This document shows, one piece after another, positions 16,296 through 51,771 of a DNA stretch of 64,000 bases. The stretch lies in sequence record MK250028.1; one strand, given 5' to 3'. The position numbers were made by a program, and so were the translations under genes. Position 1 is the first letter of the stretch, and the number at the start of each line of letters is the position of its first letter. The notes under the pieces were generated by a model. The model worked only from the letters and a program-made list of their open reading frames with translations. It was not told the DNA's origin and searched no databases.

Positions 16296-16362
16296 TTTTA
16301 ATTAAACTATATGATTGTTTGTATATTTATTGAAGATTATTTTTTATTTTCAAATATTTTAT

Positions 16363-17737: not shown

Positions 17738-17970
17738 TATATGATAGAAATTATTGAAATATGGTTTCCTATTATTGCATTTATTGCATGTTCATATTTA
17801 ATATATATGGATAGAAAACATTTTAAGAAAGTTGAAAAAGAATTAGATAAAATAGAAAAAGATATTCATCATGAATAATTTTTTGATTTTATTTTTTTGT
17901 TTGAAATAAAATATGTATCTTTGTATTGTTAATAAAAATAATATTAATTAATTTTTAAATAATAAAAAAT

Positions 17971-23101: not shown

Positions 23102-23956
23102 ATGAATAATTTTGATGATGCAATAAAAAAGAAATTATTAGAAGATGTTAATAATTTCAATGATATAATTTATAATAGAAAGACTATTAATGAAAGTTCT
23201 ATTAATAGAATGTTTTATTGGATTAATACATGTGATTGCGCATTTATTACTGCATTTAGATATGAATTAACAAATGTAGTAAATCCTGATAAAACATATT
23301 ACGGACCTAATAATGATTGGAAAGATAAAAAGATATTCACTCATGAAGAGAATCGCATGAAGAATAAATTGCTTTATGGTGAATTACTTAAATTAAAATA
23401 TGGTGTTATCAAGGTAAAAGGTGTATATCCAGAAGGTATGGATAAAGAATCATCTGAAGAAAGTTATTTAGTTGTAAATAGATTTAATGATCTTGAATTT
23501 TTAAATAATATTTTAAGATTAGGAGAATTTTATAATCAAGACTCTATCTATTATAAGCCGAAGAATAAAACATATGGTTATCTTATAGGCACGAATAATG
23601 CATACCCAGGTTATCATAAGAAAGGAGATGAAAGTACATTAAAATTAGGTACTGCTTCAAATTTTATGTCACGACTTGGAAATAAAGCATTCTCATTTAT
23701 TCCAAAAAATGCTATTAAATTTAATAATAAAGAAGATGCAGTAAATACAGAATCTGAATATCAAAAGTATTGGACAGATTATTCAGGAACGTCATTTAAA
23801 GATAGAAAAAAGAACAGAACAATAAATCCTAAATTACAAGAAGCTTTAGAATTTTGGAGAACTAATTTAGGTGGTATTGATATTATTGAAAAAATGCATC
23901 CAAAAACAAGATTATGTATGTTTAGTTTTTTAAGAGAAAATTTAAATAATGAATAA
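23102..23956 (+). CDS. Conserved T4-like phage protein (gp30.3-like)
   Basis: Pattern FITAFR...N..KN..L...L....YGVIKVKGVYPE...EESYLV...LG..YNQDSI, recognised from T4 30.3-like proteins. N-terminal INESS. Confidence 0.5.
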   Translation: MNNFDDAIKKKLLEDVNNFNDIIYNRKTINESSINRMFYWINTCDCAFITAFRYELTNVVNPDKTYYGPNNDWKDKKIFTHEENRMKNKLLYGELLKLKYGVIKVKGVYPEGMDKESSEESYLVVNRFNDLEFLNNILRLGEFYNQDSIYYKPKNKTYGYLIGTNNAYPGYHKKGDESTLKLGTASNFMSRLGNKAFSFIPKNAIKFNNKEDAVNTESEYQKYWTDYSGTSFKDRKKNRTINPKLQEALEFWRTNLGGIDIIEKMHPKTRLCMFSFLRENLNNE

Positions 23957-24959
23957 TAAAGATAATTAGATAATTTCAAAATATATAGAAAATAATTCTA
24001 TTAAAAAGAATTGTCAATATTGGAATCATATAGATACAGATGATCAAATTTATATTAAAGATAAATTTAAACATATCAAAGATATAAAATTATCAGAATG
24101 TCTCTATATGATTCTTCATCATTTAGATAATAGGCCAATTTGTCCTATATGTCATAAAGAAATAAAACTAGAAAGATTCTCATTAGGATACAAAACATTT
24201 TGCTCTAATACATGTAAATATTCAGATAAAGGAAAACAACTTATTCATGAAAAACAAAAGGAGACATGTTTAGAAAAATATGGAGTTAATAATCCAATGA
24301 AAGATATTTCTATCAAAAATAAATCTATATCTAAATGTAAAGAAACAAATAAACGAAAATACAATGTTGAATATAATTTTCAACGTGAAGATATAAGAAA
24401 ACAAATTATTCAAACAGTAAAAAATAAAACCGGTTATGAATATGCGTTTTTAAATAAAGAAAAAGTATTATATACATTACATAATAAATATGGCTCTGGT
24501 ATAGATAATGTATTTCAATTAGATAGCATTAAAGATAAATCGAATAAAACAAAAGAATTAAATAATAGTTTTAATACTTCTAAATATGAAGATTTAACAT
24601 ATGAAATATTAAGAGAACATTATAGTAATGTAATAAGACAATTTAAATCAGAATTATATCCATTTAATTGTGATTTTTATATTGTAGATAAAGATACATA
24701 TATAGAAATAAATGCAAGTTGGACACATGGCAAACATCCATTTAATGAGGATGATTTAAATGATGTTAAACTTTATAATGAATGGATGAATAAATCAGAC
24801 TATTATAAGAATTCTGCTTATAATTGGAGATTTAGAGATACAAAGAAAAGGAATATTGCAAAAGAAAATAATTTAAGATATTTTGAAATATTCCCTATAA
24901 ATATAGAAGATTTAAAAAATAAATTGAAAAAAATTATTCAAAAAATAGACAATTTATAA
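23949..24959 (+). CDS. Free-standing homing-endonuclease-like protein with a TAG at codon 7
   Basis: ATG 23949 overlaps the upstream stop and is in frame with track ORF 24108-24959. CPICH...FCSNTC zinc motif, basic repeats, and a C-terminal CDFYI...IEIN..WTHG nuclease-like motif. Confidence 0.7.
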
Positions 24960-25001: not shown

Positions 25002-26126
25002 ATGCCTAAGAAAGTTTAGTTTGAAGAATTTGAGTAGAGATTAAAAAATAAATTTGGTGATAAGTTTAAATATATTGATTTAAGTTTAATAGATAAAGAA
25101 AACTTTAATTATTTAGATAAGTATCCTATTAAATGTTTAATACATAATAAAATAGCATATAAAGAGCCGAAAATCTTTTTAAGATCTACAACATTAAATA
25201 TATGTAGTAAATGTCAAAGGGAATAGCAAGTTCGTGATTCACATAAAATGCATGAAGGTAAAGAAAGACATTATACATCAGTTGATGAATTTCTAGAGCG
25301 TTTATATTAGAAATATAAAGATAAAATAACTATTGATAAAAATGATATTTTATTAAATAAAAATGGTTCAGTAAATTTTTCATAGAAAATGAAATTTATA
25401 TGTCAAAAACATGGTGAATTTTATTGTAAACCATCCGATATATTTCGTTCAACTCATGGATGCTCAAAATGTGCTAATGAATATATGAAATTAAAAAATA
25501 TTCAATATGGTGAAGAACGAAGATAGTCATTTATAAATGATGCTATTAAAATTCATGGTAATCAATATGATTATTCAAAGGTTGATATAACAGGTAAACT
25601 AAAAAAAGTTGAAATTATATGTAAAGATCACGGTTCATTTTTTATGATGCCATCTTTACATTTAAGAGGTGAAGGTTGTAAACTTTGTAATAAAACAAAT
25701 TTATTAAATTGTGAACGACGTTTATATCAAATATTAATTGATAATTTTCCTAATGAAGAAATTATTAAATAGTATCATAACTTTTTAGGAAGACAAAGTT
25801 TAGATTTTTATTTTCCTAAATATAAAATAGGAATAGAATATCAAGGTAAGCAACATTTTGTTACTAGTGAATATTTACATAATGACACAAGGCATTCATT
25901 AAAACATTAGAAAGAACTTGATGAAAAGAAGTTCAATAAATGTAAAGAACATAATGTTACACTTTTATATTTTACATTTGATAAATAGTATGAAAATATT
26001 GAATATTACTCAAAACTATATGTAAATATAAAAGACTTAATTGAAAAAATACAATATATAATAAATAATTACAATGTTTGCGTTAATAGTAATACAGACA
26101 TTGAGCAACAAAAATTAAATACATAA
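25002..26126 (+). CDS. Free-standing homing endonuclease (zinc-ribbon repeats plus Vsr/EDxHD-like nuclease), TAG-recoded, 374 aa
   Basis: Missing from the track because of many in-frame TAG. Repeats CQKHGEF...GCSKC and CKDHGSF...GCKLC, then LDFYFPKYKIGIEYQGKQHF. TATAAATA at 24969-24976. Confidence 0.75.
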
Positions 26127-26132
26127 TAAATT

Positions 26133-29100
26133 ATGAGCAACAAAAAAGTAGTTGGAATTGATTTAGGTACTGGAAACAGTGCGGTAGCCATCATTGAGAA
26201 TGGCGTAGCTAAAGTAATTGAAAATGCAGATGGTTATAAGACAACTCCATCTGTTGTGTACATCAAGGGTGATGAAACAAAAATTGGTGCAGCCGCAAAA
26301 CGTGGTATGGTAATGAATCCAAAGAATACCATTTCATTTGTAAAGCGTTTTATGGGTGCTAAATGGGATGATCCTGATGTACAGAAGATGTTAAAGATGG
26401 TAACATATGATGTTATCGATGAAAATGGAAATCCTCGTCTTAAGATTGACGATAAAACATATTCACCAGAGCAAATTTCATCTATGATTCTTAAGAATAT
26501 GTATGAAGTTGCAAAGGGATTCTATGGAACAGAAGATTGTAAAGACGCTGTTATTACTGTTCCTGCATGGTTTAATGATATTCAGCGTAATGCTACAAAG
26601 GTAGCAGGTCAGTTGGCTGGTTTGAATGTTCTTCGTATTATTAATGAGCCAACTGCAGCAGTTCTTTCTTCAAATATTGATACAAAATCAGGAGACAAGA
26701 TTGTTCTTGTTAATGACCTCGGTTGTAAACATTCTGTTACTGCATCCGCGCTTGCTGCTTAATCACTAAAGCAAGTGTAAAGTTAAAAACCCGTTAATTG
26801 CTGAGAGTCCCACGTTAGATATATACTAATGATAAAAATGGTCTTAAATACCGCTATTAGATGGTGACATACTAATTAGCACCAACTTTAATGTGTTGGG
26901 TATGGTAAAAAGTTTAAGAATTGGGTGACCGCCGTAAATCTTAAAATATATTAAGATAGAGCATCCAAGTATCTTGGTAACAAGATAAAGGTTCAACGAC
27001 TAGAAAAAGTAATCCTATTAATTTAGGAAGAAATTTCCACGAATGCGGGTTAGTTTGGAAGTGGTACAAGTGATATAAGATAAATATTAAAAAGAATGTT
27101 TATCTTATGATTAATACAGAGTTCTTTGATTTATTGATTAAACATATACTTAAATTATATGATGAAAATAATAATGAAATTAAATTTAATGAAATAACAT
27201 ATAAATTTGAAAAACGAAAATTTTCATCAGTTACAAGTTTAGTTATATATGTAGATAATATATCACTAACATAGAAATAGTATCGTTCATATTTTATATT
27301 ATATAAATGTAGATGTGGTCGAGAACATAAAATATTATTACAAAAATATTTCTTAAAAAAGAAATTACATTGTATTAATTGCTGTTAGGATAGAAGTTTT
27401 GATGATTATGTAATAGCGTATTATAAAGGTAAAATTAAAGAAAATAAACAAATAATATTAAAAGAATTTGATGAATATGATGATTAGTTTAAAGAAAATT
27501 ATAAAAGAAATCATTTATCAAATGAAGAATTTAAAAAATATTTACCTTATATTTATAAAATTAATAATCATTTAATAACAGAAGATATATTAAATAATAT
27601 AGTATATTATTATACAGAACATGTTAATAATCAATTTAAATTTACTGTTAATATTTCTTTTGATAATGGTATTACAAAAGAACCTATAAAATAGTTATAT
27701 TTAAAATGTAATACATGTGGACGTATATTTAAAATACATACAAATAATATAAGATTACAAGATTTATCAAATATTCAATGTAGAAAATGTAAATTAGTAA
27801 ATACTACATATCCTATTAAAAAATATAAAAATACTAATATAACATATTAGTCAGGAATTGAAAAAGAATTTATTGATTTTTGCTTTTCTAATAATATTGA
27901 AATTGAAAATGGTAAAGAAATTATTTATGAATTTGATAATAAAGTAAGAACATATATAACAGATTTTTATTTACCATAGTTTAAATATATTATAGAACTT
28001 AAAGCTAAAAATAAGTTTTATAGAGATGATTTAAAATCTGGTAAAATTGAAGCAAAAAATAAGGTATGTATTGATTATTGTAATAAAAATAATTTAGAAT
28101 TTAAGTTTGTGTTTGATTATGAATTAAATGAATTTAATCAATAGCTTCTAAATGAAAGAGATAGTCTTGAGGAATGAAAGTTCCTCGGTAAGATAAAGAG
28201 CTTACAAAGTTAAATAGAAACAAATAGGGTACAGAGGATGTTTCTATTGTTGAGATTTCTGATGGTATGATTGAGGTTCTTGCATCTGATGGTGATGTGT
28301 TCCTTGGCGGTCAGAATTATGATAATGCCATTGTTCAGTGGCTTATCGATGAGTTTAAGAAAGATACAGGTATTGATTTGAGTAAGGATAAGATGGCATA
28401 TGCACGTCTTGTAGAGGCAGCAGAGAAAGCAAAGTGTGAGTTGTCAACTACTACTCAGACAGAGATTAACCTTCCTTATATTACTGTATCTGATGGTGTT
28501 CCTCAGATGTTGATTAAGACTCTTAATCGCGCTACATTTGAGAGACTTACAGAAGATCTTACAAATAAGGTTGTAGAGATTGCACATCGTGCTGTAGAGA
28601 AGGCAGGTATTACAGAGGATCAGATTAGTGAGATTCTTCTTGTTGGGGGCTCTTCACGTATTCCTTCAGTTCAGGATGCATTGGAGAAGTCATTTAACAA
28701 ACCTTTGAATAAGACCTGTAATTTTGATGAGGCTGTTGCACTTGGTGCTGCTATTCAGGCAAATACACTTGCAGGTAATGCAACAGAGGATTCAGTACTT
28801 CTTTTGGATGTTACACCAATTTCACTTGGTATTGAGGTAAATGGTTGTGAGATGGCTAAGTTGATTGAAGCTAATACAACTATTCCTACACGTAAGTCAC
28901 AGACATTTACAACTGCAGTAGATAATCAACCAGCTGTAACTATTAAGGTACTTCAGGGTGAACGTCCAATGTCCGCTGATAATAAGGTAATTGGTACATT
29001 TAATTTGGAGGGTATTGCACCAGCTCCTAAGGGTGTTCCTCAGATTGAAGTAACATTTGATATTAATGCGGATGGTATTCTTGAAGTAACTGCAAAGGAT

Positions 29101-29598
29101 AAGGGTACAAATAAGGAACAGAAGGTAACAATTCAGTCTCCTAACGCACTTTCTGATGAAGAGATTGCACGTATTAAGGCAGATGCTGAGAAGTTTGCAG
29201 AAGCAGATAAGAAGAAGAAAGAGGAAGTTGATAAGTTGAATACTGCAGAACAATATGCAACACAGGTTCAGAAGTATATTGATGATGAGAAAACAGGTGC
29301 ATCTGTTCCATCTGATAAGAAAGAAACATTGAAGACAAAGATTACTGCAGTTCTTGATGCAGTTTCTAAGAAGGATGTATCAGCAGCAGAGACTGCACGT
29401 GCAGATCTTGAAACTGTATTTAAACCTATTGTTGAGGAAATGTATAAGAATGCAGGTGGTGCAACAGCAGGTCAACCTCAGAATGAATCACAGGGAAATC
29501 CATTTGCTAATGCAGGATTTGGTGATGCAAATGCTTCAACTTCTGATACTAAGGCAGATGATGACGTTCAAGAGGCAGATTTTGAGGAAGTAAAGTAA
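26133..29598 (+). CDS. dnaK: DnaK (Hsp70) chaperone, spliced from exon 1 26133-26726 and exon 2 28228-29598
   Basis: GIDLGT, TVPAWF and RIINEPTAA in exon 1. Joining gives NDLGC|GTEDVSIVE, equivalent to the conserved DLGGGTFD. Exon 2 has LVGGSSRIP, LLDVTPISLG and ends EADFEEVK. Confidence 0.92.
26727..28227 (+). mobile_element. Group I intron in dnaK
   Basis: 5' splice U26726 pairs with G26742 in P1. P10: CATTCTGTTAC (26730-40) pairs with exon 2 start GTACAGAGGATG. P3 AACCCGT (26788-94)/GCGGGTT (27045-51). R GTTCAACGACTA (26991-27002). S/P7' TAGTC (28162-66). P9 GAGGAA/TTCCTC. Terminal G28227. Confidence 0.88.
27107..28177 (+). CDS. Intron-encoded endonuclease (zinc fingers plus PD-(D/E)xK/TnsA-like domain), TAG-recoded, 356 aa
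   Basis: ATG 27107 to TGA 28177 with eight in-frame TAG by my count. CRCG, CINC, CNTC and CRKC motifs, then YITDFYLP.FKYIIELKAK. Confidence 0.75.
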
Positions 29599-29782: not shown

Positions 29783-30871
29783 ATGACAAAAGACTTGTAT
29801 GATATATTAGGTATTGAGAAAGGTTGTAATGATCAGAAAAAGATTAAAACTGCATTTAGACAACTTTCTAAGAAATACCATCCAGATATGCAGAGAGGAA
29901 AATCAGATGCAGAGGTAAAGGAAGCTGAGGAAAAGTTTAAGGATGTTAACCATGCATATGAAGTTTTGAGTGATCCTCAAAAGAAAGAGAATTATGATAA
30001 TTTTGGTGATGAAAATGGAAGACCAAATCCATTTGGTGGTTCCGGTGGTTTTAATCCATTTGGTGGTGATTTTGATCCATTTGGAGGATTTAATCCATTT
30101 GGAGGATTTGGTGGAAGTTCACGTCAGAAGAAAAATCAGGTTCAACCAGGTAGGGATATTCAGATGAAGATTCCTGTATCTATTGAAGATATATTTAAGG
30201 GAGTTAAGAAGAGTGTTAAATTTAAGAGAAACGTAAGGTGTTCTGTATGTCATGGTGCAGGTGGAACTGGTCAGAAGACATGTCCAAAGTGTCATGGAAC
30301 TGGTAGAATTATTCATCAGCAGCAATTTGCAATGGGGTCATTCTCTATTCATGAAGAAGTTTGTCCATTGTGTCATGGAACTGGTTTTTATGTAGAGAAC
30401 AAATGTGATAAGTGTGGTGGTTCTGGATTTGATAAGAAAGAAGTAAAACTTGATATTGAATTACCATCTGGAGTACAGAATGGAGAATATCGTGTATATA
30501 GTGGTGAAGGATCCGAATCAAAGAATATTTCAGGACCTAATGGTAATTTTATCGCTATTGCAGATTATACGTTTGATACAGATAGGTATCAGGTTGATGG
30601 GTTGAATGTAGTTGAACATATTCATGTCCCTTATTATAAATTGTTGCTTGGCTGTTCATATACTCTTAATATTCCTTCTGGTGTAAGTAAGGTTGTTAAG
30701 TTGAAGAGTTGTATTAAGGAAGGAACAATTATGAGATTAACCGGCGAAGGACTTAAGAGGTCTGATGGCCAAAAGGGTGATTACTTCATTTGTGTTCATT
30801 ATCAATTTCCAGAAGACCTTAGTGCGAATGATAGAGCATTGCTTGAAGTTATAGAGAAAAACAATAAATAA
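29783..30871 (+). CDS. dnaJ: DnaJ (Hsp40) co-chaperone
   Basis: J domain with HPD, G/F-rich region, four CxxCxGxG repeats and a C-terminal domain. Confidence 0.95.
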   Translation: MTKDLYDILGIEKGCNDQKKIKTAFRQLSKKYHPDMQRGKSDAEVKEAEEKFKDVNHAYEVLSDPQKKENYDNFGDENGRPNPFGGSGGFNPFGGDFDPFGGFNPFGGFGGSSRQKKNQVQPGRDIQMKIPVSIEDIFKGVKKSVKFKRNVRCSVCHGAGGTGQKTCPKCHGTGRIIHQQQFAMGSFSIHEEVCPLCHGTGFYVENKCDKCGGSGFDKKEVKLDIELPSGVQNGEYRVYSGEGSESKNISGPNGNFIAIADYTFDTDRYQVDGLNVVEHIHVPYYKLLLGCSYTLNIPSGVSKVVKLKSCIKEGTIMRLTGEGLKRSDGQKGDYFICVHYQFPEDLSANDRALLEVIEKNNK

Positions 30872-30937
30872 TATTTATTAAAACAATTTAGCTATTTTTA
30901 TATATAAATAAAAATAGCTATTTTTATTTTGTAAACC

Positions 30938-31324
30938 ATGGAAGATTTTAGTAAAGTAGAAGGTATTAAGACTAAAGGTGGAAAACCTTATGTGTAGAAT
31001 AAAGAACTTATGAAAGAGATTGTACTTTCAAAGTAGAGAGATGAACTTACATATAACGCTGTTGTTATGCTTTAGTTAATTGCCGAAAATTTAGCAAAGA
31101 AAAAACATTATAAATGTCAAGAGGATAAAGAAGATTGCATACAAACAGCAATGATGGATGTTGCCATGTATTGGAGAAGCTTTGACCCTGAGAGATTTAA
31201 TAATCCATTTGCTTATTATACAAGTATGTTATGTAATGGATTATCAAAAGGATGGAATAAGATATATGGTAAATTTAAAGCATCTGAGATGACAAGTCTT
31301 GACAACAATATACATTCATTTTAA
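30938..31324 (+). CDS. gp55: T4 gp55-like late sigma factor with three in-frame TAG (30995, 31034, 31073)
   Basis: Read-through gives PYVQNKELMKEI...LIAENLAKK...SFDPERFNNPFAYYTSM, matching the T4 gp55 pattern YVNNKELL...LIAEGLSKR...NFDETKYKNPHAYIT. TATAAATA at 30903-30910. Absent from the ORF track. Confidence 0.8.
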
Positions 31325-31343
31325 AATTAAATAATATAAATTT

Positions 31344-31877
31344 ATGCCTGCATATGATAGTTATATTGCAGAACATGGAACTGCAATAAGTGATTTAACA
31401 TTGAAGAAAATGTTAGTTAATAAAAAAGATATTTAGGATAAAATTAATAATACATTTGCATATGAAGATACGCCAGCTGTAATTCCTGGTAAATCTATTG
31501 ATGATACAATAGATAAACAATTAGATTCTTTGAATGAAGATACTGGTATGAATTCATTGATTACACAAGCAGCAATGATGAAAGCAAAAAGCGAGACTGA
31601 TAAAAAAGAAGATTTAAAACAAAAAACAGAGCGACGTAAGAATTTCATTGAATCTATGATGTATCAGCAAGGTGAACTTTATTATCAACAACATCATTAT
31701 TTTATGGATGGTAAGACAAAACGTAGAGTTCGTAAAGCAGTTGAACGTGCATATGATAAAGGTAAGTATAATAAGAGCGGAATTTATTTTGAACAACCAC
31801 AAACAAAGACTATTATTAGAAAACCAAAGAATACTAATAAGGAACCAGTAAATATGCAAGATATGTTAAAGATGTAA
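31344..31877 (+). CDS. Hypothetical protein, TAG-recoded
   Basis: ATG 31344 is in frame with track ORF 31530-31877 across one TAG. Confidence 0.65.
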
Positions 31878-39561: not shown

Positions 39562-39972
39562 ATGATAGAATTCTTATATAAAGGACAAAAGTGCTATACC
39601 AATAATCTTCCGAAGAAATTAAAGAGAATGAAGATTACAGAGAATGATATTGAAATCCTTAGAGAATTTGATGAAACACAGAAGAAAGTAAAACCAGAAG
39701 ATAATAACAATGAATTTGATAATTGGACTAAAGTTGTATATTGGGATCCTATTACAAATTATACACATATTGGTTTTACACATGGTATGAATAAACCTGA
39801 TAAAAATGAATTTTTTAAAAATTCTAAATGGAATGAAGAAACAAAAACCGGGTTAAAATATTGTACTCAAGAATGGATGGATAATGTTGTTTTGTTAAAT
39901 GGAATACCTAAATATCCTATTGTAATAGGTGATGATGGTAAGCCTGTGTTAGAAACAAAATATAATTGGTAA
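39562..39972 (+). CDS. Hypothetical protein
   Basis: 136-aa ORF directly upstream of the suppressor tRNA. Confidence 0.72.
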   Translation: MIEFLYKGQKCYTNNLPKKLKRMKITENDIEILREFDETQKKVKPEDNNNEFDNWTKVVYWDPITNYTHIGFTHGMNKPDKNEFFKNSKWNEETKTGLKYCTQEWMDNVVLLNGIPKYPIVIGDDGKPVLETKYNW

Positions 39973-40049
39973 AATAAATATATTGTTCGTTATATAATTA
40001 ACGGATATGATGAGCAATATATTTTAGATATGTAAATTAAGATGTAGAA

Positions 40050-40366
40050 TGCCCTATGGTGTAATGGTAAGCACAGTAGACTCTTTAAATAGGAGCTTTA
40101 TATGGAAACATATAAATGAAAATTCCGCTAATAAACAGAAACCTTTTAAATAGAAATATTTAATTTGGCGATGACTTACTAAATTCAATATAAAATATAT
40201 TTGATAAATGGCGCAGAGACTATATACGGAATATCTAAGTTCTATATGAATATGATAATGAAATAGTCCAGACTACAAAACCTAAGTTAGTTTTAATATG
40301 GTTGTTTATGTAAAAGTAAATGTAGTACGAAATCTATTTGTCCGGGTTCGAATCCTGGTGGGGCAA
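40050..40366 (+). tRNA. Amber suppressor tRNA (anticodon CUA, tRNA-Gln-like), exons 40050-40084 and 40330-40366
   Basis: Spliced sequence TGCCCTA TG GTGT AATGGTAA GCAC A GTAGA CTCTAAA TCTAT TTGT CCGGG TTCGAAT CCTGG TGGGGCA A folds into a canonical cloverleaf with a 7-nt loop CU-CUA-AA and a U1-A72 pair. Confidence 0.9.
40085..40329 (+). mobile_element. Group I intron (245 nt, no ORF) inside the suppressor tRNA anticodon
   Basis: P1 CTCT|T...AGGAG with the U40084-G40092 wobble. P2 TTTATATG-GAAA-CATATAAA. P3 TTCCG (40123-27)/CGGAA (40227-31). R GCAGAGACTA. P7 GACTA (40218-22)/TAGTC (40264-68). ACTACA (40272-77)/TGTAGT (40321-26). Terminal G40329. Confidence 0.9.
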
Positions 40367-42179: not shown

Positions 42180-42217
42180 ACTATTTTATATTTCTTATAT
42201 ATAAATAATATAATTAA

Positions 42218-42624
42218 GGGGATGAATTTGGATTTGCTTATTAATTATGTGGTAATAAATCGTGTAGGAATGTTAATAGCCTTTTGTAGCAATACAAAGA
42301 AACTTAGCAAATAAATTTAAATGACGACGAAATAGAATTTCGTATGGCAGCTTAATCCTGATAGGATTGGTAATATACACCCATTGAAGCATTTGCTCCT
42401 TACACGGTAAGTTTGAGCATTGTCACAGAGTTCGTAAGAGTGATAATCTCTGTTAAATAAAACTCTTACATATACTTATTCATTGTCCAATAAGAGTGAT
42501 TATGACATTAAACTATTTAACTCTAATAACACAGATATAAATGAAAACTAATAAAGACATACGCACGTAGATAGTTTATTATTGACAAGTTAGTAATACG
42601 TGGTTTCGAGTACCACCATCTCCA
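42218..42624 (+). ncRNA. ssrA: tmRNA, tag peptide (A)DDEIEFRMAA
   Basis: 5' GGGGATG pairs with 3' CATCTCC-A, including a G3-U70-type pair. T arm GTGGT-TTCGAGT-ACCAC. Tag ORF 42323-42355 follows ATAAATTTAAAT and ends GCA GCT TAA. Confidence 0.9.
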
Positions 42625-42763
42625 CATTTTTAGATTATATTTCATAATATAGAATTTTTAATTGTTTAATTTTGTAAATGAGTTGTATGTTTAGATAAAC
42701 ATATGACTCATTTTTTTGTATAATAATAAATAAGATAATAAAACTAAATATAAGCATAAATAT

Positions 42764-44650
42764 ATGCCAACTAAATTTATAGCAAGAAAGTTTAATCCAG
42801 GGAAAGCAGATCATAATAAAATAAATACACTTATTAATCTGTCTTCACTTAGTTTAAATTCAGCATAGAGTATTCTTAAAACTTCATTGGCTTTAGGATC
42901 TACTCAAACAAGTAATTATTCTGGTGATTCATTAACACCGTTTAATGATATTTTAAATCAAGATTAGAATAAGTTTACATAGTATGCAGATATTACTAAA
43001 AATACAAGTTAGTCTTATGCATACTATGATTTGTCATATCAATAGAGAAGAGAATAGTTAAGGTAGTTTGCTTCACAACAAACTATTTCATTTGTTTTAG
43101 ATACTATTGCAGATGAATCTATTATATTGGATGAAAATAATTATTTTGCATAGTTAGATTTAAATCTTCTTAAATTAAAACTTAATACTAATTATAAAGG
43201 TGCAAATGGAGAAACTGCAGATGATTTAATAAAGAATTGTCAGAAAGCATTTAAGATTATATATTCAACATATGGATGGGATAAATCTAATGATGCATGG
43301 AATTATTTTAAGAAATTTCTTATAGAAGGTTATCTTGCATTTGAGATTGTTGTTGATAATCTTATGAAACCTACAAGAATCATAGGTATGAGGGAATTGG
43401 ATCCTGCTACATTGGAACCAGATATTGAAATTGATCCAATGACAAATAAAGAAGTAAAGGTTTGGTATCAATATAAAGGTGACGCATAGTTAGAAAGGAA
43501 AATTCCAGATTCTAATATTGTATATATATCATGGTCAACAGGTATGTATGGAGAGTAGTCACGTGTATCATATCTAGAAGGTTTAATAAGATCATATACA
43601 ATGTTAACATAGTTGGAGACTTCTCGTATGGTATGGAATATCATGAATGCATAGAAAAGAGTTAAAGTTGGTATTCCTGTTGGTAATATTTCTTAGGATA
43701 AAGCTCGTGCACGCGTAAATGAAGTTAAAGCAGATTGGAATGAAGAAACAACAGTTGATGAAATATCAGGTGAGATGGTAGTAAATGGACAACCACGATT
43801 CTCTTTTTCAAAGACACATTTCTTCCCTGTACGTGATGGTAATTCAATGACTATAGAAGAAATCCCTACAGAAGGATATGATTTAAGTGATATTACTCCA
43901 TTGAAATATTTCTGGAGGCGTTTCATATTAGAAACTAAAATACCCGCTAATAGATTTATGATTGACCCTGCAGCTGAAGGTGCACATCCATTAGGTGGTG
44001 ATGATGCAAGTATAACACGAGAGGAATATGCGTTTGGACGTTTTATTAGTCGTGTTAGAAATATATATCGTGAAATTTTGTTAAAACCATTATGGGTACA
44101 AATATGTTTAATGATGCCAGAGTTAGCAAGTTCTGAATTATTGAAACAATGTATAGGTATTGTTTTTAATGAAGAAAATATGTTTGTTAAAGCAAAAGAA
44201 AGAACTGCGTTAAAACAAGGCGCGGAAATTATAGGTACATTAGCATAGATTCAATTAGGTGAGAATAAACCATTCTTTAGTATGAAATTCTTAATTGAGA
44301 AATTCTTAGGTATGTCTGATGAAGATTTTGCACTTAATGAGAAATATAAACAAGGTGAAATTATAGAGCGCTTAGAACAAGCTAAAACTATTAAACAACA
44401 TCAAGAAATGGGTAAACAAGTTGGTGAACAACAAGGTAATGGAACTCCTGGTGAAATGGATTTCGGCGGAGGTTCTGATGCAGGTGGCGGAAGTTCATTT
44501 GACGATTCATTTGGAGGCGGTTCTGATGCAGGCGGTGATTTTTCTGGAGGTGATGAAGTATTCTCTGGTGGTGACACTGGTATGGGATCCGGTGGTTCTG
44601 AAATTGCAGATACTGGTGGCGGTGATGAAGGTGGAGGTGACTTCGCTTAA
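42764..44650 (+). CDS. gp20: T4 gp20-like portal protein, TAG-recoded, 628 aa
   Basis: Single frame from ATG 42764 to TAA 44650. DTIADESII, FLIEGYLAFEI, RELDP, SYLEGLIRSY..L, IPVGN, FFPVRDG, LKYF and ITREEYAFGRFISRVR follow the gp20 motif order. Confidence 0.88.
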
Positions 44651-48757: not shown

Positions 48758-48831
48758 GGTCCGTCTGGTGTAATTGGTAACATGACAGATTGTGGTTCTG
48801 TTGTTCAGGGTTCGAGCCCCTAACGTGACCC
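48758..48831 (+). tRNA. tRNA-His (GUG), imperfect acceptor and T stems
   Basis: Anticodon arm ACAGA-TTGTGGT-TCTGT and T loop TTCGAGC. Confidence 0.75.
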
Positions 48832-48849
48832 AAAATATTATTAATATTT

Positions 48850-48926
48850 AGCGTAGTGGCCCAGTTGGTCTAAGGCACCTGTTTTGGGAACAGGTTAGAT
48901 CGCACGTTCGAATCGTGTCTACGCTA
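48850..48926 (+). tRNA. tRNA-Pro (UGG)
   Basis: AGCGTAG/CTACGCT acceptor, CCTGT-TTTGGGA-ACAGG and GCACG-TTCGAAT-CGTGT. Confidence 0.9.
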
Positions 48927-49040
48927 CAGAATAGAGTTCTTATGTTATCCTTACATAACTAAAAGAACTAAAACTTAAGATGGTAAGGCATCTATATAAT
49001 GGAAGTTCACGCCCAAGGGAAGATTTATAAGTTATAATTT

Positions 49041-49115
49041 ACTCTGTTAACTCAATTGGATTAGAGTATTTCGCTACGAACGAAAAGGTTGTGAGTTCGA
49101 TTCTTACACAGAGTA
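49041..49115 (+). tRNA. tRNA-Arg (ACG)
   Basis: ACTCTGT/ACAGAGT acceptor, TTTCG-CTACGAA-CGAAA and GTGAG-TTCGATT-CTTAC. Confidence 0.9.
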
Positions 49116-49124
49116 CAAGTAAAT

Positions 49125-49198
49125 ATCTCTATAGCTCAAAAGAATAGAGCAGTTCTCTCCTAAAGAACAGATAACAGTTTGATTCTGTTTGGAGATAC
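49125..49198 (+). tRNA. tRNA-Arg (CCU), atypical T loop
   Basis: ATCTCTA/TGGAGAT acceptor and GTTCT-CTCCTAA-AGAAC. T loop reads TTTTGATT. Confidence 0.75.
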
Positions 49199-49269
49199 AA
49201 ACAAAATTAACATTATTAATATAGACTTTTATCTATTAATGGAATATATTATAATGTAATTTGAATTTT

Positions 49270-49705
49270 AAAATACTATTAAAATGTGGGGAGTAGAGTT
49301 CCCATCATTTAAAGAGTTTCGAGAAGAAGGTATTGTATGTAAAAGCATTAAGTTTCGTTTAGCTGACGAAATGTTACCAAGTGGTGATGGTATTCATGTA
49401 CATAGGTCCATCCGTATAACTTCAGGGAATCGTAAGCATTAATCTTGGAGAGTACAGTTTTTAGTCTGAAATGACGAATTTTCCTACTGGTTGCTCAATA
49501 TGATATTAAGAGTCGGAGATAATTATTTGTAAGTTCCACAATTACGAGAGGAAAATGGAATTAAGTTGAAGGAATAACGTGATTATTCTTGGTGTGATTA
49601 GGAGAACGAAAATAACCAGTATGTATGGTGTACGTGTGCATACAGAAACAAAGCAAATAATAGCCCTTAGAGAATTTGCCGAGTAAAGGACATTAATAGT
49701 ATTTT
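49270..49705 (+). ncRNA. Unidentified ~436-nt structured RNA inside the tRNA array
   Basis: Perfect 13-bp closing helix AAAATACTATTAA/TTAATAGTATTTT, internal long-range pair TACTGGTT/AACCAGTA, several hairpins and no credible sense ORF. Confidence 0.55.
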
Positions 49706-49714
49706 TATTTATTT

Positions 49715-49792
49715 GCAGTATTGGTGTAGCTGGAGGCGCATTCCTGACTTCCACTCAGGCGGCTTGCGCGAGTTCGATTCTCGCATACTGCT
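49715..49792 (+). tRNA. tRNA-Gly (UCC)
   Basis: GCAGTAT/ATACTGC acceptor with U73, and CCTGA-CTTCCAC-TCAGG. Confidence 0.85.
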
Positions 49793-50001
49793 CATAATAA
49801 GGTAGAGTATCAATGAATGATAGAGAATAAGTTCCTGTCTGAGATCAACCTATCTGTAGTATTTAGATAATTTTATGTATACATAAAATTATAACGAAGT
49901 TTATATTACCTGTAGTCGTAATATTCAAATCGTTCGTTGACATAGTTATTCCGTGATGTAGTAGAGAGTTATAATCAGCATATAACAAACGGAATATTTT
50001 T

Positions 50002-50074
50002 GCGGAAGTATATCAATGGCTAGATAGATACGTTGCCAACGTATAGGTTGTGAGTTCGAGTCTCATTTTCCGCT
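50002..50074 (+). tRNA. tRNA-Gly (GCC)
   Basis: GCGGAAG/TTTCCGC acceptor with U73, and ATACG-TTGCCAA-CGTAT. Confidence 0.9.
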
Positions 50075-50218
50075 CTATAAACGTTTCGAGGTTTTAAAGT
50101 TGAATGTACCACCTTGCGCTTGTGTTGCTATTCACCTTTGAGTAATAGTAAAAAACTTATGGTACCAAGGATGTTTTCTACGTTGTTACATCCATTTTTT
50201 TGAATATGATAGAATATG

Positions 50219-50364
50219 AGAGTCAATACAGCAAATTAAATTGATAGATAATGTTTGAAGATTATACACAAAAAGACTCTTGAATCAAATTATAATGGGA
50301 GGCAATACAGCAAATTTTGTATTAAGGATTATTTTGCTAAAATAATATTCTATACGCCTCCTGA
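50219..50364 (+). repeat. Two tandem small structured elements sharing AATACAGCAAATT
   Basis: AGAGTC...GACTCT-TGA (50219-50283) and GGAGGC...GCCTCC-TGA (50298-50364). Each has the same 13-mer after the 5' stem and an internal hairpin. Confidence 0.6.
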
Positions 50365-50369
50365 TACTT

Positions 50370-50452
50370 GACGAGTTGCTGAGAATTGGTTAATCGCACG
50401 GTCTGCAAAACCGTTGGTCTTTGACATGTCGGTTCGAGTCCGACACTCGTCT
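50370..50452 (+). tRNA. tRNA-Cys (GCA) with a long variable region
   Basis: GACGAGT/ACTCGTC acceptor with U73, ACGGT-CTGCAAA-ACCGT, and a 13-nt variable region TGGTCTTTGACAT. Confidence 0.85.
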
Positions 50453-50485
50453 CTTTAGATTAATATTTTAAAATACTATTATAAG

Positions 50486-50746
50486 ATGAAGAAATTATTT
50501 TCTTTTATATTTTATACAATAATGATTACATCATTATTTGGATGTGCAACAAAACAAGATACAATTAATTATCTTAATAATTATGTACATAAAAATATTT
50601 CTGAAAATTGTATAAACATTTTCAGTAATCAAAGATATAATGAATATATTGATACTGTTACTAATATTAAATATTATGTTTATATAGATTATAATAGTAA
50701 CATCAATATAACAGATAAAAGATTTCCGAGGTATACAGCTCGTTAA
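50486..50746 (+). CDS. Small lipoprotein-like protein
   Basis: MKK, a hydrophobic stretch and lipobox LFGC. Confidence 0.55.
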   Translation: MKKLFSFIFYTIMITSLFGCATKQDTINYLNNYVHKNISENCINIFSNQRYNEYIDTVTNIKYYVYIDYNSNINITDKRFPRYTAR

Positions 50747-51044
50747 AAGAGGTTGACTTGTATATTCTACATTACCTACTGTATAACAATATATGAGTGT
50801 ACATGTGAAAAGATACACCATGTTCTATTAATATAAAAATGTACATATATAGGGTAACAATTATATTAATATCAGATGCATGACATATATGAATATAATA
50901 ACGAATTCGTGAAATGACTATTGTTTTTAGTTGCTTGGAAACGGCGAACTTAGTTTTATCAATAGAGGAAGTATAATATTAAAACAGTTAAATGTAAATC
51001 TTTCTGAGACAATGGGGACAACTTGTAGTAAGAGAGTATTTTTA

Positions 51045-51159
51045 GCTAGTATAGTTTAGTGGCAAAACACCCAAATCCCAGGGATAAGAGATGGTTTGAG
51101 TTGTAGTGTACAATACAATATACAGAAGATTTTGGTGAGTTCGATTCTCACTGCTAGCT
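51045..51159 (+). ncRNA. tRNA-like RNA with a 65-nt insertion replacing the anticodon arm
   Basis: Acceptor GCTAGTA/TGCTAGC-U, D arm GTTT-AGTGGCA-AAAC and T arm GTGAG-TTCGATT-CTCAC. No canonical anticodon arm. Confidence 0.65.
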
Positions 51160-51165
51160 CAATAT

Positions 51166-51293
51166 GAAGTGCGTAGTTTAAATGGTAAAACATCCTTTGA
51201 GTAGGACTCTGACGAGAGATAGATAACAATGTTAGACTCTATTTAATTCCATTGTTTTATTAATGAGTATAGGTTCGAATCCTATGGTACTTC
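51166..51293 (+). ncRNA. tRNA-like RNA with a 76-nt multibranched insertion
   Basis: GAAGTGC/GTACTTC acceptor-like helix, D arm GTTT-AAATGGTA-AAAC and T arm ATAGG-TTCGAAT-CCTAT. Confidence 0.65.
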
Positions 51294-51583
51294 CAAATTT
51301 ATATAGATAAAAAGATTCTGGTGATTAGATAAAACATTATAAGAAAAGAGAAAAAACTTAGGTAACTGCAGATAACTAAGGGTCGTAAGAGTATATGAAG
51401 AAAGATGAACTATGGATACCTCCTTATAATGCGTTTTATCAATAATTAAAGTAGTCTATAATATAAGTTCATTAACGTTATAGAAAAAACGAATATTGAT
51501 AAGTCTACTATGCAGATGGGGCATTGAGAATGCCGTATAGTTCTAAAGCATCGTAAAACAGTTTATTTATATATTTTTAATAT

Positions 51584-51658
51584 GGCTAGATAGCTCAGTT
51601 CGGTTAGAGCGCGTGATTCATATCCACGAGGTCGTGTGTTCGATCCACACTCTTGCTA
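51584..51658 (+). tRNA. tRNA with CAU anticodon (elongator Met or Ile2)
   Basis: GGCTAGA/TCTTGCT acceptor, CGTGA-TTCATAT-CCACG and GTGTG-TTCGATC-CACAC. Lacks initiator hallmarks. Confidence 0.85.
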
Positions 51659-51771
51659 CAGTGTTTTTAGTTGTTTATTAATGATTTGAGATATATCAAT
51701 TTTTGGTATATCTCTTTTTTATTTAGAAAATAATTTGTATCTTTGTATTATTAATTTAAATTTAATAGATT

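Follow-up and report, generated by a model that had tools for sequence, protein, structure and literature searches.

A gp55-type late sigma factor gene with three in-frame TAG codons in a recoded Lak megaphage

Introduction

Does the altered genetic code of a phage that uses TAG as a sense codon extend to its late transcription factor, as well as to its structural genes? This question is raised by an open reading frame (ORF) in a 64,000-nucleotide stretch of sequence record MK250028.1, here called the window, which derives from a Lak-type Prevotella megaphage and has a G+C content of 25%. The ORF starts with ATG at position 30938, ends with TAA at 31322-31324 and carries TAG at codons 20, 33 and 46, which we confirmed from the sequence. 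An initial annotation, made from the DNA letters alone, had proposed that the read-through product is related to gp55, the late sigma factor of phage T4, that a T4-type late promoter motif precedes both this gene and the suppressor tRNA gene, and that intron splicing, suppressor tRNA, gp55 and late transcription of TAG-containing genes form a cascade with a double lock.

The reading that we favour, with a probability of roughly 0.65, is that the Lak phage decodes TAG as glutamine, possesses one gp55-type sigma factor, and divides its genes into a TAG-free early class with a host-type promoter box and a TAG-rich late class preceded by [AT]ATAAATA, the two being expressed in a feed-forward order. 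For genome-wide tests the complete sister genome Lak-B5 (MK250024, 543,529 bp) was used in place of the window phage's own genome. Coordinates of the features are collected in Table 1.

Genetic code

Lak megaphages are known to use code 15 (TAG = Gln), to encode a tRNA with anticodon CUA, tRNA(CUA), together with release factor 2 (RF2), to contain introns in tRNA genes and to have TAG mostly in structural genes (PMC6784885, PMC8346664, Borges preprint). When TAG is read as sense, the window contains ORFs of 2043, 751, 626, 851 and 1570 codons with 13-25 in-frame TAGs apiece, and TAG is clearly a sense codon here, occurring up to 25 times in frame in a single long ORF. In-frame TAGs are present in conserved genes, where they align with Gln in relatives, and the phage encodes both tRNA(CUA) and RF2. 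The RF2 gene of Lak-B5 is itself TAG-free and scores 402.8 bits, above the cut-off. Glutamine in the TAG-rich genes of Lak-B5 is specified by 1305 TAG, 1421 CAA and 200 CAG codons, so these genes are nearly CAG-free, and at least one TAG is found in 197 of the 495 genes of this genome. ARAGORN also reports two Lak-B5 tRNAs whose anticodon, UUA, would pair with TAA (196541-196615 on the minus strand and 340103-340175 on the plus strand); TAA is nonetheless the near-universal stop of the called Lak-B5 genes. The same puzzle of UUA anticodons and TAA stops was described by Crisci et al. 2021.

Identity of the gp55-like protein

Translated with TAG as glutamine, the ORF matches the PHROG 234 profile 'late sigma transcription factor' with E=4e-11, residues 16-100 aligning to positions 8-103 of 181, a region of homology that spans all three TAGs. 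The only sequence match in the PDB is T4 gp55, chain 7d7c_F (phmmer, E=0.014), and comparison of the family profile with T4 gp55 by hhalign gave a probability of 89% (E=2e-6). An AlphaFold (AF2) model based on 26 relatives reached a pLDDT of 86.6 and a pTM of 0.77. Its best Foldseek match in the PDB was again 7d7c_F (prob 1.00, TMq 0.67, with an E-value of 6.9e-3 that lies above the tool's 0.001 line), followed by region 2 of sigma-E, sigma-S and sigma-B. Against the general sigma70-ECF model TIGR02937 the protein scores 22 bits, below the cut-off of 42.9, and region 2 alone matches (residues 52-101), as expected because it is a minimal factor with region 2 only. By several independent lines the ORF is a T4 gp55-type minimal sigma factor; the hidden Markov model and structure searches that the initial annotation had called for bear out its assignment. 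Exactly one phrog_234 locus is present in the complete Lak-B5 genome, and it has three TAGs inside. The C-terminal tail ...SEMTSLDNNIHSF (31283-31321) is strongly conserved across the Lak family and is predicted to be disordered.

If translation stopped at the first TAG a 19-residue peptide would result, and the first in-frame ATG past codon 46 is codon 72, a restart at which would lose helices 1 and 2 of the model. Judged by this predicted structure, no truncated gp55 product could work. Full-length late sigma factor cannot be made before UAG is decoded. With its three in-frame TAGs, gp55 can therefore be made only after the phage turns TAG from stop to glutamine, and the code switch would thus stand upstream of the switch to late transcription.

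Lak-B5 also harbors two full-length, TAG-free genes of the sigma-70 family that exceed the TIGR02937 cut-off (193461-194474 on the minus strand and 334772-335707 on the plus strand). Neither the early nor the late motif described below was found in their -70 to -10 regions, and they are candidates for middle-class transcription.

TAG codons in gp55 homologues

Protein and locus searches yielded about 70 distinct gp55 homologues; the DNA of each was read, and recoding was judged from 10-kb flanks. In all fifteen published genomes of Prevotella phages Lak-A, Lak-B and Lak-C the ORF is 96-98% identical (tblastn). In the alignments with Lak-B the three TAGs are the only mismatches to the TAG=Gln translation, and they are therefore conserved in close relatives; the three TAGs are identical throughout the Lak-A/B/C genomes. 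Among Lak-family homologues of 45-99% identity that lie in visibly recoded flanks, each has one to four TAGs (about 19 of 19 with at least one), and amino acid conservation persists on either side of every TAG. The initial annotation had named a TAG-free gp55 in a relative with the same code as evidence that would speak against it; all homologues in visibly recoded flanks carry TAG. The TAG-free homologues either have flanks that are apparently standard-code or belong to distant huge phages. Loci L143-L160 seemed to be same-code relatives with a TAG-free gp55 by a crude count, but inspection of the ORFs identified the TAG-laden frames as antisense shadows of TAG-free genes, and L111 likewise looks locally standard-code; these calls cover the 10-kb flanks, and recoding may occur elsewhere on those contigs.

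The sites of the TAGs shift within the family. Nineteen alignment columns hold TAG in some member, and only site 46 is widely shared. The near-invariant Q69 is replaced by TAG in five relatives of separate lineages, and the equivalence of TAG and Gln is therefore supported within the gp55 family itself. In clade L128-L137 (about 45% identity) the TAGs do not align with Gln; they stand at K32 and E62, which are otherwise conserved, and at position 53, a variable S/A site. The decoded amino acid may differ there, or the changes may be non-synonymous. The three sites of the window are variable, polar positions, and three of the five Gln codons of the gene are TAG, as compared to 45% in the TAG-rich class. 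Because the TAGs fall at 19 different positions, they do not look like conserved regulatory sites; more probably they show that gp55 belongs to a class of genes in which TAG is permitted. The conservation of TAG across relatives holds for Lak-A/B/C and, at site 46, down to about 49% identity.

Gene classes and promoter-like motifs

The genes of the window are split into those with many TAGs and almost no CAG and those with zero TAG. The TAG-rich genes of recognisable function encode the portal, the prohead peptidase (protease), the tail tube, tape-measure-like proteins and homing endonucleases, and large unknown proteins also belong to this class. The TAG-free genes include those for an RNA ligase, a methyltransferase, a glucosyltransferase, DnaK and DnaJ. 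In the window, the motif [AT]ATAAATA occurs at -70 to -10 of 12 of 13 TAG-rich genes and of 2 of 20 TAG-free genes (p=3e-6). The corresponding numbers for Lak-B5 are 57/98 and 20/162 (p=8e-15), with 9/98 in the reverse-strand control. The Bacteroidota host -7 box TATCTTTG has the opposite distribution in Lak-B5, being found before none of 98 TAG-rich and 35 of 162 TAG-free genes (p=2e-8). An unbiased ranking of k-mers in Lak-B5 placed ATAAATA and AATAAATA on top for the TAG-rich genes and TGTATCTTTG on top for the TAG-free genes. All eight copies of TGTATCTTTG in the window are on the plus strand, each preceding a TAG-free gene, and they conform to the Bacteroidota -7 element consensus TANNTTTGY (PMC12632263). 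The late motif ends 20-30 nucleotides before the ATG in 43 of 67 Lak-B5 cases, and the 27 nucleotides found for gp55 are the modal spacing.

The late-class consensus is AATAAATA, in which the preferred first base is A, not T; TATAAATA is a minor variant. The consensus of gp55-dependent late promoters in T4 is TATAAATA. The Lak late motif is almost the same as this consensus, and by this analogy the promoter idea of the initial annotation seems right in substance. The exact TATAAATA 8-mer was rejected as a signal: the window contains 26 copies, fewer than the 43.5 +/- 6.6 of shuffled sequences, so it is not enriched and has no weight alone, and the generalised motif was obtained from the k-mer comparison.

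By its TAG content as well as by its motif, gp55 falls into the late class. The classes are sharply separated and match the two motifs; therefore something keeps the early genes TAG-free, and gene class carries information on timing.

Within the 584-nucleotide gap before the portal gene, a transfer-messenger RNA (tmRNA) gene was detected at 42218-42627, barely at the gathering score (Rfam 47.3 vs 47 bits). A copy of TATAAATA at 42200-42207 lies directly upstream of this match.

Region upstream of gp55

The TATAAATA copy before gp55 occupies the loop and 3' arm of a hairpin. The stem-loop proper (30889-30920) is followed by TTTTTATTTT, and the whole is probably the intrinsic terminator of dnaJ. 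A simple terminator scan misses the hairpin at 30889-30930, the stem having too few G-C pairs; folding supports it. In relatives L102, L103, L104, L112, L114-L116, L122 and L123 the motif [AT]ATAAATA is found 30-42 nucleotides before the gp55 start with no hairpin, and a late-type promoter on gp55 therefore appears to be recurrent, not universal. The T4-late motif claimed for this gene thus exists and has the modal spacing; as an 8-mer it is unenriched, it is embedded in a hairpin, and it is lost in Lak-A/C. A AAACTTTT box that precedes gp55 in some relatives was considered and dismissed, as it is unenriched in the window (15 vs 9.5) and probably represents terminator tails.

Transcripts of dnaJ may run on into gp55. 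Weak PHROG matches had suggested a Q-like antiterminator for this upstream neighbour; the protein is DnaJ, and the matches sit on its zinc-finger region. Both dnaK and dnaJ have raised G+C and many CAG codons. The dnaK (Hsp70) gene is split by an insertion of about 1.5 kb that holds a TAG-rich HNH-like endonuclease ORF (27107-28177, 8 TAG); this TAG-free gene is therefore probably interrupted by an intron that encodes a homing endonuclease. Closely preceding dnaK are two further endonuclease ORFs (23949-24959 and 25002-26126).

Suppressor tRNA(CUA) and its intron

The exons at 40050-40084 and 40330-40366, when joined, form a clean 73-nucleotide cloverleaf with anticodon CUA and tRNA-Gln-like features (U1-A72 and a D-arm resembling that of the phage's own tRNA-Gln). 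Rfam at the gathering threshold found neither the interrupted tRNA nor the intron, and ARAGORN without the intron option misses the tRNA. With introns allowed, ARAGORN calls Ser(CGA) with the junction one base off, which is unlikely because the tRNA has no long variable arm and because of the U/G junction rule. The score of the intron against the group I model RF00028 (Intron_gpI) is 15.7 bits (E=0.14), below the gathering score of 50. Both the U|...G| junctions and a homologue in a crAss-like phage are in keeping with a group I intron, though they do not establish membership of that class. This homologous intron, with 74% identity, occupies the same anticodon position of tRNA(CUA) in crAss-like phage cr115_1, and it is also present in a similar tRNA on another viral contig of 38 kb (IMG/VR). 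Intron-bearing suppressor tRNAs can be hidden from default tRNA finders, which may explain some recoded phages reported to be suppressor-less.

Suppressor cassettes and introns were compared at the window locus (40050-40366), Lak-B5 (407870-407942), L216 (NC_055898 30169-31198) and L223. The window locus is 100% identical in Lak-B1, B3, B6 and B9, and the cassette is absent at the syntenic site in Lak-B2, B4, B5, B7 and B8. Direct inspection of Lak-B5 shows that its syntenic site is occupied by another tRNA(CUA), one that lacks an intron, differs in its upstream flank and is not preceded by AATAAATA. Hence the late motif noted upstream of the suppressor tRNA is present in the window, as AATAAATA at 39973-39980, and has no equivalent before the Lak-B5 gene.

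Within the tRNA cluster at 48758-51659 of the window, Rfam also matches a tRNA of 115 nucleotides (51045-51159, 36 bits) that is not reported by ARAGORN. This may be a further tRNA with an intron or with some other oddity.

Table 1. Positions of the features in the window discussed in the text
Feature	Position	Strand	Remarks
gp55-like late sigma factor gene, 128 codons + TAA (TAG=Gln)	30938..31324	+	PHROG 234, PDB 7d7c_F, hhalign, Foldseek
In-frame TAG, codon 20	30995..30997	+	relatives S, K, A or Q; TAG only in window clade and L103
In-frame TAG, codon 33	31034..31036	+	relatives E, K or Q; TAG only in window/Lak-A/B/C clade
In-frame TAG, codon 46	31073..31075	+	middle of helix 2 of model; TAG common to 13 distinct homologues, down to ~49% identity
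TATAAATA, minor variant of [AT]ATAAATA	30903..30910	+	27 nt between motif and gp55 ATG
13-bp hairpin TAGCTATTTTTAT / ATAAAAATAGCTA, loop ATATAA, then T-run	30889..30930	+	dG -14.4 kcal/mol, z=-4.7
Phage dnaJ, TAG-free, CAG-rich	29783..30871	+	directly upstream of gp55; DnaJ 6jzb_A E=1e-50
Phage dnaK, 3' part, TAG-free	28267..29598	+	DnaK E=1e-108, chain residues ~216-620; phrog_22485 positions 209-612
Phage dnaK, 5' part	26133..26762	+	phrog_22485 positions 2-194
AATAAATA, major late-class variant	39973..39980	+	69 nt before tRNA(CUA) gene; overlaps stop codon of ORF 39562-39972
Suppressor tRNA(CUA), 5' exon, ends ...ACUCU	40050..40084	+	joined exons fold as cloverleaf
Group-I-like intron in anticodon loop, 245 nt	40085..40329	+	5' exon ends U, intron ends G
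Suppressor tRNA(CUA), 3' exon	40330..40366	+	joined exons fold as cloverleaf
Portal gene, TAG-rich late-class example	42764..44650	+	14 TAG, AATAAATA upstream
Early-class box TGTATCTTTG	17914..17923	+	seven others start at 16362, 21303, 41013, 45431, 47880, 51736 and 52312

Proposed order of events and alternative explanations

We infer the following order of events in time. At the beginning, the host RNA polymerase and the standard code would express the TAG-free genes, and the parts of the code switch, the TAG-free RF2 gene and the tRNA(CUA) gene, would have to come on then or soon after. Once UAG is decoded, gp55 mRNA would give the full-length sigma factor. Since gp55 cannot make its own first copy, the first gp55 mRNA must come from elsewhere, and it would probably be supplied by transcripts of the TAG-free genes dnaK and dnaJ that run on through the leaky dnaJ hairpin. 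The sigma factor would then direct RNA polymerase to AATAAATA promoters, including its own promoter, and the late mRNAs would require UAG decoding once more. As far as visible in the sequence, this would be a coherent feed-forward arrangement with two keys, a late promoter and TAG decoding. The double lock of the initial annotation is retained in the sense that the late motif precedes TAG-rich genes, and its cascade has to be shortened: Lak-B5 carries an intron-less suppressor at the same locus, and splicing is therefore no conserved step of the circuit.

Several other observations weigh against this reading or weaken the initial annotation. If gp55 and the suppressor tRNA both have late-type promoters, these cannot set the cascade going, and both products need an earlier source. 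The DNA helicase gene of the window has one TAG, so TAG use in Lak goes beyond structural genes, and Borges et al. found replication genes to be mostly recoded; TAG-bearing therefore need not mean late. The late motif is strand-specific and has a fixed distance to the ATG, and it could act in the mRNA, not as a promoter. That gp55 reads the AATAAATA motif is presumed by analogy, and the two TAG-free sigma-70-family proteins of Lak-B5 could be its readers. The same two genes bear on the claim that recoding acts at the master regulator: a regulator that needs three read-throughs, encoded by the only phrog_234 gene of Lak-B5, is indeed recoded, whereas its rank as master may be shared. Lak-A/C preserve the hairpin through compensatory changes (TTTTTAT/ATAAAAA to TTCTTA/TAAGAA) with loss of the motif, which is also missing upstream of gp55 in L105-L107. 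No sliding clamp of the gp45 type (phrog_223) or the DnaN type (TIGR00663) was found in Lak-B5, and no match supports the downstream ORF 31344-31877 as gp33; activation of Lak gp55 by the T4 mechanism (clamp plus gp33) would be an extrapolation from T4. Finally, there is no sign of site-specific selection for the gp55 TAGs, as the columns turn over and the TAG share is ordinary for the class.

The last point leads to the explanation that comes closest to the favoured one. If neutral drift alone placed the TAGs, gp55 would simply be among the approximately 40% of Lak genes expressed after suppression, and the dependence would be real, unselected and without regulatory meaning. We put the chance of this slightly below even. 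It agrees with the 19 TAG columns of which only site 46 is widely shared, with the variable, polar character of the window's sites, with the unremarkable TAG fraction among the gp55 Gln codons and with the spread of TAG over 197 of 495 genes. The sharp separation of codon classes that match two promoter motifs argues against it, as does the retention of gp55 in the TAG class by all recoded lineages examined. Drift departs from the favoured circuit in adaptive value only, the mechanism being the same, and it is more likely that the gp55 TAGs were tolerated, CAG having drifted to TAG in a gene that is expressed once the switch has taken place, than that they were specifically selected. It is doubtful, though a serious alternative, that TATAAATA before gp55 is merely part of the dnaJ terminator, with gp55 promoterless, transcribed by read-through from dnaK-dnaJ and devoid of positive autoregulation. 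The position of the motif within the hairpin (in the loop and 3' arm, with a T-run after the 13-bp stem), the compensated hairpin without motif in Lak-A/C and the lack of enrichment of the 8-mer all fit this explanation, but the 27-nucleotide spacing is modal for the late class and many diverged relatives have the motif 30-42 nucleotides before gp55 with no hairpin.

It is improbable that the protein has the gp55 fold and does something else, the AATAAATA genes being read by another phage sigma factor or the motif being a leader or translation signal at the RNA level. The two full-length sigma-70-family genes of Lak-B5, the fixed distance between motif and ATG and the failure to find a clamp and gp33 would be accounted for in this way; the near-identity of the motif to the T4 late consensus would not. 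Furthermore, sigma factors with region 2 only recognise a -10-like element without a -35 element, and T4-type late promoters are the only known targets of gp55-family factors. The idea of a decaying pseudogene with TAGs as true stops is already effectively refuted: translation table 11 breaks the frame three times, yet protein-level conservation continues across the TAGs in dozens of relatives of 45-99% identity, the fold is predicted confidently, every Lak-A/B/C genome has the same three TAGs, TAG serves as a sense codon genome-wide and Lak-B5 has no other gp55 gene.

Going beyond the favoured circuit, the code switch could serve as master timer of infection by Lak phages, wired as a coherent feed-forward loop whose thresholds are graded, which we regard as unlikely. 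Suppressor activity would then first permit the late sigma factor, whose three TAGs would make its yield approximately the cube of the suppression efficiency, and the factor would subsequently amplify itself from its own late promoter. Portal, tail and giant proteins with 14-25 TAGs would need near-complete suppression, so that TAG number per gene and the sigma gate together would give a sharp and irreversible commitment to assembly. The suppressor cassettes with and without an intron would act as exchangeable modules for tuning the timer.

Comparison with known systems

The Lak protein is a member of the T4 gp55 family and shares its minimal, sigma region-2-like fold, and the -10-like motif before the structural genes of Lak is nearly identical to that of the T4 late promoters. 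The Lak protein is smaller, with 128 amino acids as compared to 185 for T4 gp55, and lacks the linker between fold and tail. Its tail ...TSLDNNIHSF recalls the clamp-binding tail ...SPSLDFLYEAND (SLDFLYEAND) of the T4 protein, which is a resemblance only. In T4, gp55 acts with gp33 and the gp45 sliding clamp, whereas a gp45-type or DnaN clamp was not detected in Lak-B5 and gp33 was not identified. The host of Lak is a Bacteroidota species. Early and middle promoters drive T4 gene 55, so that it is transcribed ahead of replication. It has no in-frame stops, unlike the Lak gene with its three TAGs and late-type motif. The wiring of Lak gp55 thus differs from that in T4, where gene 55 has no such gate.

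Bacteroidota sigma-A promoters consist of -33 and -7 elements. The TGTATCTTTG(Y) boxes located 24-47 nucleotides before the ATG of TAG-free Lak genes conform to the -7 consensus, whereas upstream of them there is no clear TTTG but a T-rich block resembling TTTTTTATTTAAA. The intron resembles group I introns of cyanobacterial and plastid tRNA-Leu(UAA) and of tRNA-fMet in that it interrupts the anticodon, follows a 5' exon ending in U and ends with G, and its presence is likewise polymorphic among close Lak genomes. In contrast to these, the putative Lak intron resides in a phage suppressor tRNA(CUA), and its Rfam score is far below the threshold.

Closest to the present case are the systems in which recoding is thought to act as a timer, described for Lak, crAss-like and other gut phages (Devoto 2019, Yutin 2021, Borges 2021/2022). 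The phage group and the TAG=Gln code are the same, and the suppressor tRNA(CUA), the phage RF2 and the concentration of TAG in structural genes are all shared. In that literature (PMC6784885, PMC8346664, Borges preprint) recoding is a post-transcriptional gate on structural and lysis proteins and sigma factors are mentioned only generically; the words 'gp55' and 'sigma' are both absent from the Borges preprint, and a mention of an amber-dependent late sigma factor was found in none of the Lak and recoding papers searched. The idea of the genetic code as a clock in recoded gut phages has so far rested on structural and lysis genes alone. The amber dependence of the sole gp55-type sigma factor and the genome-wide match of codon classes with a host-type and a T4-late-type motif turn it into a concrete circuit with testable predictions for start sites, the order of proteins and the effect of TAG removal, and the pair of motifs would predict the temporal class of genes, which is useful for the annotation of recoded megaphages. 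The wiring, which is real and apparently unreported, extends the known model: in Lak the late transcription factor is gated as well, and the codon classes run parallel to two classes of promoter motif.

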